A DNA stretch of 64,000 bases from assembly GCF_033153115.1 (NCBI RefSeq), contig NW_026889794.1, positions 5,146,001-5,210,000 on the forward strand, given 5' to 3'. Below the pieces are notes generated by a model, which was not told the DNA's origin, did no database searches, and saw nothing but the letters and a program-made list of their open reading frames with translations. Positions 24,561 to 29,327 of this stretch are shown piece after piece. Numbering within the stretch: the stretch's first letter is position 1; each line of letters begins with the position of its first letter. The DNA comes from Saccostrea echinata. Taxonomy: Eukaryota. A program made the position numbers and the translations under genes.

Positions 24561-27500
24561 ATGCCAGCTTGTAGCTGTAAACAACATACTAACTTTTCAA
24601 AAGATGAGACTTTTAAAATATACAGACTTTCCAGCAAGAAATTCAAAACTTCTGTTGTTGAAGGTCTCATTGAAAATGGTCATCTGTGCAAAAGGTCAGT
24701 ATACTTATGTACAGCATGTGCTGCATACAGCGAGAAAAACTTAATTTCCAATGGAAAAGACATTGAAAACGAACTTGTTGAGCAAATAGTTAATTTAATT
24801 AAAACAAACAACATATCTGATGAGAATGTGAGTAAAATTGTGGAAGCCATTGGCACTAGAGAAAGCAGAGAGATGAAAGACGATTTTAATGAAAATATAT
24901 TCAGCCAATACAAAAATGTTGATTTTTTAACATCTGCCGCTATTGATACGTGGATTTCTGAAAGAAACAATGTCGTATCTTCATTTTTATTGTCTTTGTG
25001 TGGGAAAAAGATGTGTGATTTATCATCTACAGAAAAAACTAAGATTGTGTTTGCTATTGAACATTTGTACTGCCTTGTTTCTTCGAACATAATCATGCCA
25101 TTTTCATTTAGTTTGAATCTCTTAACATATTACATGTCAAATAGCAAAACAGTATGTAATATGTACTCCAGTGCTCATCCCGCCGGAAGTTACACGTCTG
25201 TTCTGAAATGGATAGAAGAACATGCAACCACTCCAATAACCATTCCATTTCAGCATGACGTGATAACATATTTCGACAACAACCAAGTTTTAGCGAGGAA
25301 CTGGAGGGTGCGCTATGATGCCAAAGCTATTTTGAGCTATGTCACTACTGTTGTCCACTTCTTTCCTAATCCCACGACAGATTTACAACTTGTCAATAAT
25401 TTCTCTCCCAGACACTGGTTTTATAACATTCAAATTTCTGATAAATACAGTGCTATTGTAGAATTCATCAATTTCTATGAAAATTTATTTAGATCACTTC
25501 GAGAACATTTCATCGAAAACAGGATAAATGTTCTATTACAACAGCAACATCCAGGGCTAACTTCTACAGAGGACATCGTTTCCGATCTTTTAAAAAACAA
25601 GAAGAAGAAATTTTCTGATAATTCCAGATCCCAGGTTGATGTTTATTCCTTTATATCAAATTCCCATACTACTTCTCCTACAATTCAAATGGGAAATCCA
25701 ATATCAGTTAATCCTTGTTCATTTAAATCTGTTCAAGTTGTTTTAGAAAATTTGAAGTGTACTGCAGGAATTCCAGATCATAGAAAATGGAGTATAGTAG
25801 GTTGTGATGGGCTTCCTTTCCTTCTGTCTCATCGCATCATAAAAGACAACCCCCATCTTCAAGATATACTCCTCCAACCTGGACTGGGACATGTTGAAAT
25901 TAATATGTCCAAAGGTACTTTATTGTTGGTGNNNNNNNNNNNNNNNNNNNNNNNNNNNNNNNNNNNNNNNNNNNNNNNNNNNNNNNNNNNNNNNNNNNNN
26001 NNNNNNNNNNNNNNNNNNNNNNNNNNNNNNNNNNNNNNNNNNNNNNNNNNNNNNNNNNNNNNNNNNNNNNNNNNNNTATGGCAAGTCATAGGGGTAGATT
26101 TGGCCAAACTATTAGGCTACAGATCGCCAAAGGCACTCCAATCCTGCTTAGATGCCAATGATCACCACAAAGCCATGCAGTTCATTGAAATTCTTCTTTT
26201 TGGAACAGGTCTGTAAACATAAATGTAAATAATTTTTTATTTTTTCTCAAATACATCTATACATTTAGACATTTCTTATTCATAGGAGATGAATTGTTGT
26301 ACCCCTACGTGTATCATTGCTCCGAAAGGGAAATGGAACCTTCTGGGAAAGGGTTTTTCGCCTGGTGTAAGGAAGTAAAGGATCCCAACTACATGTAAAA
26401 AAATTATTTGATAAATTACAATTTAACAAATCCTGTATATATATATATATATATATACAGGAAAATATTGGATTTCATAAAAAAATATAATATTGGATTT
26501 CATAATAATGCATAGTTTACGTACTTGTAATGCAGGTTCTTGCTGGAGTCCATATTTACGTATGCACTAGCAGTGTACTTGTTTAGAGCAGGGATACGAC
26601 GTAATAACAGTAACGTCATTATGGCCTCCAGACTGAAGTTTTCTCCCCTTTACTTTGGTGTGTCCAAAACCAACTATCAACAGATTGAATTGTTAGACAT
26701 CATTATGAGAGTATGTGCACCAACTGAAGTCCTTAAATTCATCCAGGAGCACGAGTCCTTCACTCGTAAGAATTGCATGGTCTTAACTCAACTGCACAAA
26801 AATGCCAAATGACGCACTTAATATAAACAATAACTCTATCTACCTTGTAACAGGAGATTTCATTAGTTAGAAGGAGGTTGTAAATTTTCGTACACATGAC
26901 TTGATTGGATAAAAAACGTGACGTCACAATGCATAATTTTTCTGTGCAAATAACATGACGTCAAGAAGGAGAAAATATTATGGACAGTTTGAAACAGCAT
27001 ATTGTTTGAACTAGGGTTTACAAAAATTAAATTATTGATTGAAACTCCATATTTAATGATAAACATGCATGTTAATTAATAGTATTGTTATATGTATACA
27101 GTTAACAATGGTTATCTGAATTATCTCTTTAATTTCTTTATCTCAGATACCATGGATACGTAAAACTTACCTAAAATTAACAACCATTTGATCTCTTTAA
27201 GTTTCTTATCTTGAATCATAGGATATATAGAATTTTTCTCTGTATCATTGGGTTTCAAAGAACGATGTTTAACTGTACATAAAATAAATATTTAGAATCT
27301 GGAAATACCAGCAAAGGAGAGGGCTGTGATTTTATATTGGAGGCCAAAAATAGACAGGCTAAAAGTTGGCTTCCCAGCGGTGCGCCAAAAGAGAAACACT
27401 GGATGCAATGTTGCAGAAATCTGGATACATTAGAAGATGCAAGTATTTTACAAACATTTTGTGAAATAAAAATGAATAAAATAAAAAGAAATGATATCAA

Positions 27501-29327
27501 ACATAGTAGGAAGATAATTTTATTACAGACATAACATAGTTGTTTATCTGTGGATGGGACACCTAAACTTTGTTTTCTTTACAATGGTATTAGAAGAAAA
27601 ATAAAAGCCCATGCATTCATCATGGACCCAATACCCACAACGGGCACGGTCACACCCAACCCAATGTCCACGTTCCTGTGTTGTCAAACAGACATTGCAA
27701 GTTTCAGGAACTTTTGTCGTTATTGTTTCAGTCTGAGTGCATTTGGTCTTGCATACAACTATCCTTCTCTTCTTTGAAGTCTGATATCCATCTGATCTCT
27801 TTTCCTTTTCTCCTGATTTAGAGTTAGTTATAGGGGGGAGAAAAGTAGGTTGAGGAGATGGAAACGAAGGAGAGGGAGAGGCAAGAGAAGGTTGTGGGGA
27901 GAGTGCATTTAAAGATAGTATAGGAGGTATTGACGAGGTAGAACAGTGTGGGGTTGAGATAAGTTCAGCAGAGGTAGAAGATGAGCAATTCGTAGTAATA
28001 GAAGAGGAAGAGGATATCGAAGTTGTTATAACAGAGGGCGGTGCGCTAGGAACGTTAGAGGGGGGAGATTTTATGATTCGCTGCATGTGCTGAAATGTAT
28101 AATCAATGCGTGTTTTAAAATTAAAAAAAAGTAATAAAAAAATTTCAATCCAACCACTTCTTTAAATAAATAAATAACTTATTGAATGAGATTAATATAC
28201 TAACATCTTCAAAATAAGGTGTGGCATACGTGGACATTTTTCCAGATGCTGATTTCACAATAATTAATATTTCACTTTTACTTGTAAGATGGANNNNNNN
28301 NNNNNNNNNNNNNNNNNNNNNNNNNNNNNNNNNNNNNNNNNNNNNNNNNNNNNNNNNNNNNNNNNNNNNNNNNNNNNNNNNNNNNNNNNNNNNNNNNNNN
28401 NNNNNNNNNNNNNNNNNNNNNAACATGAAATCCCAATTGAACATAAGGGACTCCAGTGATGATACAATTTTCCACACCAATCTTGAAAATGAAATATTTC
28501 AGTGGCGTTCAGAACTAAGAGCAGCAGAATACCTCTCCAATCCCTTCTCCTCCACCGATCATACTTCTCTATGCAACAAATCACTAGATAAAGAACTCGT
28601 AAATTTTTCCCAGAAATGTAAAAACAATAGACAACATTATATTAAAGAAGTTTCTAAAAATAATTCAGTCAAACTCTCACTTTCTCTAGAACCAATTTTT
28701 TTTACAAGTTTGGAACGCACACACTTTCATTCTATCGAAAGTAGAACAAAACCAGAAATAGCAGCCAAGATTGAGGAACAGATTGAGAAGCTACTTGATT
28801 TGGATTTTGAAGCTGGTATGCATATTTAAAATTTTCAACATCTTTAAAATAATCATACGTATCGGCATGTTTTTCTGCATTTTTTTTTTTTTTTGGGGGT
28901 TAAAAAAGGAGAAGACAGAAAAGTACAATGGAAAAGAGACATAAAGAATGGTGGCAAAAAAATGTATATTAATTTCTACAAAGAATTATTAGAAGTTGTA
29001 GAAAGTTCGCAAGATGTGATGAAGGACGAAGGTACGTTATATATTCATACCTTTTTCAAGATTGTGGTTTTTCTCTTGTACACGGAGTCGTGTCGCTTTT
29101 TTGCATCCTCTATGTATGTACTGGGCGTAGGTCCAGATCTTGACAAGCCCCTCTTCCTTTGACCTTTGTTATTTTTCCCGGGATTTACTTTACTATTCTG
29201 CATGATATTATAACCGCATATATTATATTTTTTAATTTATTTTTAATAAAATAAAATTAAAAATACGAAAAAGGGGGGGGGGTTATTGTAAAATTATCAT
29301 TTTTTTTTCAGAAACACCTGGAATATG
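24561..29327 (+). CDS. Spliced DDE transposase, DUF6589/Academ-like
   Basis: Exons about 24561-25914, gap-26208, 26286-26394, 26536-26765, 27296-27438 (GC donor), gap-28815, ~28909-29031, 29311-29327. Motifs: N-terminal CSCKQH...CTAC; FDNNQV; VGCDGLP; QPGLGHVEINM; FRAGIRRNN; GEGCDFILEAKNRQAKSW. Confidence 0.75.
27544..29203 (-). CDS. SRF-like MADS-box + Ser/Pro linker + PHD-finger protein carried by the transposon
   Basis: Exon 29051-29203 (MQNSK...YIEDAKKRHDSVYKRKTTILKK|gtatga); exon gap-28205 (HLTSKSEILIIVKSASGKMSTYATPYFED|gttagt); exon 28089-27544 (cag|HMQRII...CNVC...WVGCDRARCGYWVHDEC...FRCPIH). Visible junctions are phase 0. Confidence 0.78.

Follow-up and report, generated by a model that had tools for sequence, protein, structure and literature searches.

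Predicted interleaving of a transposase gene and a MADS-PHD gene within a DNA transposon of the oyster Saccostrea echinata

Two genes on opposite strands of one element

We analyzed a stretch of 64,000 nucleotides from Saccostrea echinata (RefSeq assembly GCF_033153115.1, contig NW_026889794.1, positions 5,146,001 to 5,210,000 of the forward strand), hereafter the window, which is AT-rich (~33% G+C). Window positions 23880-30062 are occupied by a DNA transposon of 6183 bp with inverted ends, and both genes studied here lie inside it. The first, on the + strand, is a transposase gene of at least eight exons, belonging to a DUF6589 / RAG1-N-terminal-like family. The second, on the − strand, has three exons and encodes a predicted SRF-type MADS and PHD protein of ~265 amino acids (aa). 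In what follows, T1-T8 denote the transposase exons (+), M1-M3 the MADS-PHD exons (−), Lnnn genomic loci and Pnnnn related proteins. The 487-aa first piece of the transposase had ~100 genomic matches, including two uninterrupted reading frames, L018 (1041 aa; L018:4532-7654 on the − strand, 93% identical to a Saccostrea cucullata protein) and L017 (1054 aa). The exons were modelled as follows.

24561..25931, + strand: exon T1; probable start codon at 24561; runs into the first run of N letters (gap 1); candidate catalytic D at 25275-77, D at 25806-08 and E at 25896-98
26079..26208, + strand: exon T2, visible part; homologous to L018 residues 647-691
26286..26394, + strand: exon T3; together with T4 colinear with L018 residues 692-807; splice sites read directly
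26536..26765, + strand: exon T4; end of the DUF6589 region
27296..27438, + strand: exon T5; acceptor AG at 27294-95; GC donor at 27439; 87% identical to XP_062621416.1
27519..27524, − strand: AATAAA signal of the MADS-PHD gene, ~20 nt past its stop
27544..28089, − strand: exon M3; Ser/Pro-rich linker and PHD finger; stop at 27546-44; acceptor AG at 28091-90
28205..28293, − strand: exon M2, visible part; second half of the MADS box; donor GT at 28204-03; true start at ~28306, with the first ~4 codons and the acceptor in the second run of N letters (gap 2)
28422..28815, + strand: exon T6, visible part, C-terminal domain; true start at ~28412; donor GT at 28816-17, phase 1
28909..29031, + strand: exon T7; donor GT at 29032-33, phase 1
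29051..29203, − strand: exon M1; start codon at 29203-01; AT-hook-like basic stretch and first half of the MADS box; donor GT at 29050-49, phase 0
29457..29506, + strand: exon T8, the last; acceptor AG at 29455-56, phase 1; acidic tail of 16 residues; stop at 29504-06

The exons of the two genes alternate

Along the + strand the order is T5, then M3 and M2, then T6 and T7, then M1, and finally T8. As modelled, the T5-T6 intron would host M3 and M2, the first intron of the MADS-PHD gene, which splits the MADS box, would host T6 and T7, and the T7-T8 intron would host M1; the interleaving would involve the 3' halves of both genes. The original prediction, made from the window alone, held that the exons of each gene lie in the introns of the other, and this is borne out by homologues, by conserved splice sites and phases, by its recurrence at 12 or more loci and by a second oyster species. 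Its exon order and coordinates stand for T5, M3, M2, T6, T7 and M1. They fail for the last transposase exon, which had been placed at 29311-29327. We assign this exon to 29457-29506 because its length, phase (1) and stop position agree with L025:3219-3172 and with the tail of the S. cucullata RefSeq model XP_062621416.1. The segment 29311-29327 has a good acceptor, lacks homology and was rejected as probably wrong; it may be an alternative exon. Whichever of the two is taken, M1 lies within the last transposase intron.

The opposing donors of T7 and M1, which had been predicted to lie about 20 nt apart at 29032 and 29050, are indeed both GT (29032-33 on the + strand, 29050-49 on the − strand), and the stretch shared by both introns is just 19 nt long. 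Two paralogous loci differ in this spacing, with 14 nt in L025 and 47 nt in L013.

Exons T6 to T8 continue the transposase gene

The interleaving depends on T6-T8 belonging to the same gene as T5. The uninterrupted frame L018 is colinear with the window through T5 (27295-27435, residues 807-853) and T6 (28482-28793, residues 877-981), and P0028 is a single frame containing T4, T5 and T6. XP_062621416.1 (P0009) joins T5 to T6 through four residues and continues with T7 and a tail of 16 residues, and the gap in its alignment with the window coincides exactly with the predicted T6-T7 intron. When T6 was searched against 1.8 billion proteins, T6-like segments were found at the C-terminus of proteins of 950-1100 aa. 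Relative to a paralogue on contig C6, T6 and T7 are 58% and 42% identical (E 1.6e-48 and 7e-9, respectively). The original prediction had named protein alignment to homologues as the check that the segment after 28420 continues the exon encoding RNLDTLED, and L018, P0028 and XP_062621416.1 are colinear across this join. By homology, T6-T8 are part of the transposase gene together with T5.

It could be argued instead that T6-T8 are a separate third gene or relic exons, and that the functional transposase ends after T5 at the read-through stop 27532-34; one gene would then be nested and no true interleaving would exist. An ATG is the second visible codon of T6 in the window, an ORF caller built a 135-aa protein (P0007) from T6 in a related species, the catalytic D, D and E are confined to T1, and the T5 donor is a non-canonical GC. 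However, the ATG is not conserved, since I occupies that position in L013, P0008 and P0009. Conservation extends to the T5 donor position and the T6 acceptor. T5 and T6 adjoin each other in the uninterrupted frames L018 and P0028 and in the RefSeq model, and T6 is under the same constraint as T1. As for the GC donor (GAT followed by GCAAGT), it is found in all three young copies of the element, and eight paralogues have GT at the same position. We consider a separate third gene or relic exons improbable.

A split MADS box and a PHD finger

The PHD finger (PF00628) of M3 has spacing of the Cys4-His-Cys3 type and scored 26.8 bits against a cut-off of 24, and the nearest solved PHD fingers were H3K4me3-reading BPTF, ING2/4, KDM5 and MLL5. 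M1 matched positions 1-22 of the 48 in the Pfam SRF-TF profile (PF00319), with 16.4 bits and an E value of 0.006 (cut-off, 26 bits). For profiles built from the paralogous M1 and M2 exons, the best match among sequences of the Protein Data Bank (PDB) was yeast MCM1, at residues 13-46 for M1 and 54-78 for M2; other matches were SRF and MEF2D for M1 and SEPALLATA 3 for M2. In the paralogue L013, which is free of N letters, exon 2 starts with AKEL after a CAG acceptor in phase 0 and continues into the strand shown by M2 of the window. Because M1 and M2 match consecutive parts of MCM1 and exon 2 is complete in L013, the two exons appear to form one MADS box across a phase-0 intron. A search for homologues of M3 returned only unspliced ORFs from one related species and no annotated MADS-PHD model, and the Atlas returned generic PHD clusters only.

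One rearranged form of the MADS-PHD gene was noted at L024:3334-3951 on the − strand (G000:C16:4587334-4587951), with a duplicate at C54:36.228M. Here M1 is inverted and fused in frame after T7, in an open frame of 205 aa. The fusion breaks the MADS-PHD gene, and a SINE-like insert adjoins it.

The layout is conserved, and two N gaps fall within the genes

The interleaved order was found in the window and at no fewer than 11 other loci of the genome (at least 12 in total), where the proteins are 35-85% identical to those of the window, and L013 and L025 agree with the window in splice sites and phases. The T and M pieces alike had dN values of 0.25-0.45; synonymous sites are saturated, so that dN/dS is unquantifiable for most pieces. 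This pattern of divergence shows apparent purifying selection on all T and M pieces. Judged by these homologues, the interleaved structure is real and conserved.

Two runs of N letters fall within the genes.

25932..26076, no strand: gap 1; coding nearly continuous across it by homology; probably hides a short intron
28294..28421, no strand: gap 2; by comparison with homologues, hides the acceptors of M2 (−) and T6 (+), facing away from each other, and ~100 nt that would be intronic for both genes

Gap 1 lies shortly after the candidate catalytic E of the transposase, at a point where homologues are continuous. At this spot the length between the flanking exons is 147 in the window, versus 109 and 151 nt in the other two copies. 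For L001-L003, which cover the equivalent of gap 1, the first 1500 bases and the match coordinates were used. Gap 2 would conceal ~4 residues of M2, ~3 of T6 and both acceptors. No reading frame is required to cross it, as the left exon is on the − strand, the right exon is on the + strand, and both start inside the gap. The equivalent stretch of L013 contains a long (TA)n run.

Since gap 2 coincides with the change from a − strand exon to a + strand exon, the apparent interleaving might be an artefact of the assembly, produced by a mis-join at the N letters. Against this, the order is the same and the spacing nearly so in two copies on other contigs: from the end of M3 to the start of T6, by coordinates only, the distance is 336 in the window, 354 in the C1 copy and 338 in the C25 copy. 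The same order is also present in paralogues without N letters (L013, L026, L027 and L028) and in S. cucullata gene models. Because of the similar spacing in the two other copies and the shared order in the gap-free paralogues, the flanks of gap 2 belong together. A mis-join was rejected on these grounds, and we regard it as extremely improbable.

The element is a recently mobile DNA transposon

The ends of the element were defined by the following features.

23875..23879, no strand: left target-site duplication ATTAA, repeated at 30063-30067
23880..24114, no strand: left terminal inverted repeat, 235 bp, a perfect match to the right end; carries two GCTATATAGC palindromes (23906, 23924) and related AGCTAT half-sites
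29828..30062, no strand: right terminal inverted repeat, 235 bp, matching the left end; contains a + strand AATAAA at 29980

Three young copies, >99% identical to one another, are present in the genome, on contigs C45 (the window), C1 and C25. All three are flanked by a target-site duplication of 5 bp (ATTAA, CTTAA and CAAAG), and their flanks are all different. Inverted repeats and a target duplication of fixed length at independent insertions, the marks of a DNA transposon with terminal inverted repeats, are thus both present. Since the 235-bp ends match perfectly, each copy has its own 5-bp duplication and the three copies stand at unrelated sites, the element is a cut-and-paste transposon that was recently mobile.

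The motif GCTATATAGC has four matches in the window, all within the two ends, where 0.04 would be expected. In the C6 paralogue, whose proteins are 58% identical to those of the window, the first ~100 bp of the ends remain ~87-90% identical; the two palindromes persist with unchanged spacing, as does a third, wider one, and the changes are located in the spacers. A dimeric MADS protein would be a natural candidate binder of such terminal palindromes. In the mechanism that we propose, the MADS-PHD protein would act as an accessory factor of the element. It would dimerize on the conserved AGCTATATAGCT palindromes of the ends, and its PHD finger would read histone H3 tails. If so, a MADS-box/PHD protein would join the short list of transposon accessory factors, with the conserved end palindromes as candidate binding sites. 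As a separate observation, the terminal ~100 bp (window 23880-23990 and 29952-30062; L004:3440-3560; L013:3945-4065) are far better conserved between paralogues than coding sequence and carry AGCTAT half-sites arrayed at a fixed spacing.

Considering the ends and the genes together, the segment 23880-30062 is probably an autonomous two-gene DNA transposon with interleaved transposase and MADS-PHD genes. Several points weigh against this explanation. Both acceptors at gap 2 are hidden from view in the window, and the T5 donor, non-canonical as it is, has a GT 4 nt downstream. Each half of the MADS box taken alone falls below the Pfam cut-off, and Pfam scans of the window transposase pieces yielded no family and chance-level matches only. 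Every type-B copy inspected in the genome, save the three near-identical ones, carries stops, frameshifts or deletions, and the constraint described above is therefore deduced from old divergence. The phylogenetic tree, in which L016 is placed with a support of only 0.585, does not polarise the interleaved layout against a tail-to-tail layout described below. Finally, transcription, splice joints and transcript ends are predictions from the sequence.

Fold and affinities of the transposase

This animal transposase family is poorly described. For DUF6589 (PF20231), with a cut-off of 27 bits, the relative P0088 scored 33.4 bits and L017 scored 23.9 bits (E 2e-5), while the window pieces had no match; L018 falls among mollusc DUF6589 clusters in the Atlas. 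The Cys-rich 'importin-binding' region of the RAG1 N-terminus (Pfam RAG1_imp_bd) was matched above cut-off by five distant relatives, with 28-44 bits, one of them from amphioxus (the positive family members are P0109, P0129-P0131 and P0134). The window transposase has kept at most part of the N-terminal zinc motif, namely the second half of the Cys/His pattern. A phmmer search of the L018 protein against PDB sequences returned only a weak match to the RAG1 N-terminus (E 0.068).

An AlphaFold2 (AF2) model was built for residues 180-880 of L018, a relative 24-30% identical to the window protein, from 21 aligned sequences (pLDDT 82, pTM 0.78). Its top structural match by VIA-align was the P element transposase (6p5a; Z 11.3, rmsd 6.7, 355 residues aligned, 8% identity), followed by ISCth4, Hermes, RAG1 (Z 6.3), Tn5 and many retroviral integrases; Transib had a Z of 4.5. 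A Foldseek search of the model against the PDB gave nothing at E <= 0.001, with transposases among the weak rows. Almost every one of the 21 aligned sequences keeps the D, D and E columns; one row has gaps at two of them. All three residues are present in the window. In the modelled fold the first D is on the first strand, the second D follows the strand at model residues 389-393, and the E is on the following helix. The fold and the motif support the + strand protein as a predicted RNase-H-fold DDE transposase.

Several known systems resemble the element in part. The best structural match to the catalytic region is the P element transposase, but the window element has a 5-bp rather than an 8-bp duplication, and its D-to-E spacing is 30 residues, which therefore leaves no room for the GTP-binding insertion. 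A THAP domain was not found in Pfam scans of the window pieces and relatives. Membership in the P element superfamily was rejected on the basis of the 5-bp duplication, the missing THAP domain and the lack of room for the insertion.

RAG-like transposons (ProtoRAG, with RAG1L and RAG2L) resemble the element in their 5-bp duplication and in a second, convergent gene with a PHD finger at its end; RAG2 ends in a PHD finger in many animals. However, the partner gene of the window carries a MADS box in place of the kelch propeller of RAG2, and a RAG1/Transib core domain was not detected in Pfam scans of the window pieces and relatives. RAG-like/Transib membership was rejected, given the missing RAG1 core, the weak structural matches (Z 6.3 and 4.5) and a partner without kelch. 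Another parallel is N-RAG-TP of Aplysia, a mollusc element defined by the RAG1 N-terminal region (PMC8355894). Distant members of the window's transposase family likewise score above the Pfam cut-off for that region, and with the 5-bp duplication and the convergent PHD partner the family looks like the N-RAG-TP lineage. This DUF6589 family, with its 5-bp duplication, its PHD partner and a RAG1-N-terminal-like region among distant members, would bear on the long-standing question of the source of the non-core RAG1 sequence.

Few two-gene DNA transposons are known. MuDR (maize Mutator) and other convergent two-gene transposons resemble the element in having long inverted ends and a transposase with a convergent accessory gene. 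In the lineage of the window, by contrast, exons of the two genes alternate along their 3' halves, the transposase does not resemble MURA, the target duplication measures 5 bp and the accessory protein combines MADS and PHD. The MuDR target duplication is 9-11 bp. Membership in the MuDR family was rejected; converging genes without shared introns occur only in the sister lineage described in the next section. PIF/Harbinger elements, with a transposase and a Myb-like DNA-binding protein, offer the idea of an element-encoded DNA-binding protein that recruits the transposase to subterminal sites. They differ in transposase family and accessory domains, and Harbinger is not interleaved; the Harbinger target duplication is 3 bp.

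A tail-to-tail sister lineage

The original prediction had set the interleaved locus against two-gene transposons with a tail-to-tail layout. This contrast proved apt within the family itself, as a sister lineage, type A, has that layout, like MuDR, at six loci (L021, L022, L023, L029 and duplicates). In type A loci, T5 is followed by an intron of ~100 nt and by T6, T7 and the tail in one frame, after which PHD, M2 and M1 follow on the opposite strand. The MADS box is split at the same place as in the interleaved lineage. The outgroup loci L017 and L018 have a single uninterrupted transposase frame; a search of the surrounding 10 kb revealed neither MADS nor PHD pieces. In the tree, the interleaved clade had a support of 0.98. 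The interleaved layout could have arisen from the tail-to-tail layout by moving a block across an intron, e.g., by block duplication followed by loss of the redundant copies. The presence of both layouts in one genome offers a natural experiment on the origin and mutual regulation of overlapping antisense units. Just past M1 of one tail-to-tail copy (L022:7968-9941, + strand), a retroelement is inserted, with a 657-aa reverse-transcriptase-like frame.

Consequences of the interleaved layout

We infer that both genes are transcribed and spliced as modelled. The primary transcripts would then be antisense to each other over ~2 kb. According to the original prediction, this overlap could cause transcriptional interference or dsRNA. 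The spliced mRNAs would not overlap, provided that the predicted splice sites and polyadenylation signals are used and that transcription of the MADS-PHD gene begins within the T7-T8 intron. Animals also have nested and interleaved host genes, with exons of one gene within introns of an opposite-strand gene. The window pair differs in that both genes lie inside one mobile element of 6.2 kb, each nests in the other, and transposition passes the arrangement on. Transcriptional interference has been documented for such opposite-strand animal gene pairs (PMC5174743, PMC3192792). Searches of the literature on DUF6589, on MADS and PHD with transposons and on interleaved genes gave no description of an interleaved layout in a mobile element. 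We know of no two-gene DNA transposon with mutually interleaved genes.

The original prediction also held that the layout locks the two genes together against deletion. Two defective interleaved copies speak to this claim: L013 (G000:C6:8590000-8599999) has lost T5 and M3, and L025 (G000:C6:12962000-12971999) has lost M2 and the first ~100 residues of M3. Given these internal deletions, the layout does not prevent deletion. At most, a deletion in the interleaved region would remove parts of both genes at once. In addition, T7 of L025 carries a 1-nt homopolymer frameshift.

The interleaving may have no regulatory or protective role at all, and be a neutral, frozen rearrangement with long introns tolerated as in nested host genes. 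The sister lineage works, or worked, with a plain tail-to-tail layout, and interleaved copies still suffer deletions, as in L013 and L025. The layout has, on the other hand, persisted down to 35-60% protein identity, with facing donors 14-47 nt apart; this is a weak objection, being also compatible with neutrality once the arrangement was fixed. We give neutrality close to an even chance.

The interleaving could conversely be a selected control device, in which the antisense overlap of the pre-mRNAs, the facing donors and the weak GC donor would couple or alternate the expression of the two genes. Retention of the T5-T6 intron would yield a truncated repressor ending at 27534. Intron retention in the P element yields a repressor. 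The family would then be a living N-RAG-TP lineage with its own PHD partner, RAG-like in logic. We consider this combination unlikely.

Automatic models of the locus

The interleaved locus is prone to be mis-modelled by gene finders. One S. cucullata RefSeq model, for instance, takes the reverse strand of the M3 linker for an exon preceding T6, treating antisense sequence of the PHD exon as coding. In the window, a mechanical ORF of 202 aa runs through the N letters of gap 2 and was rejected as an artefact. Two further N runs are present in the window, at 5327-5454 (128 letters) and 16897-17094 (198 letters).

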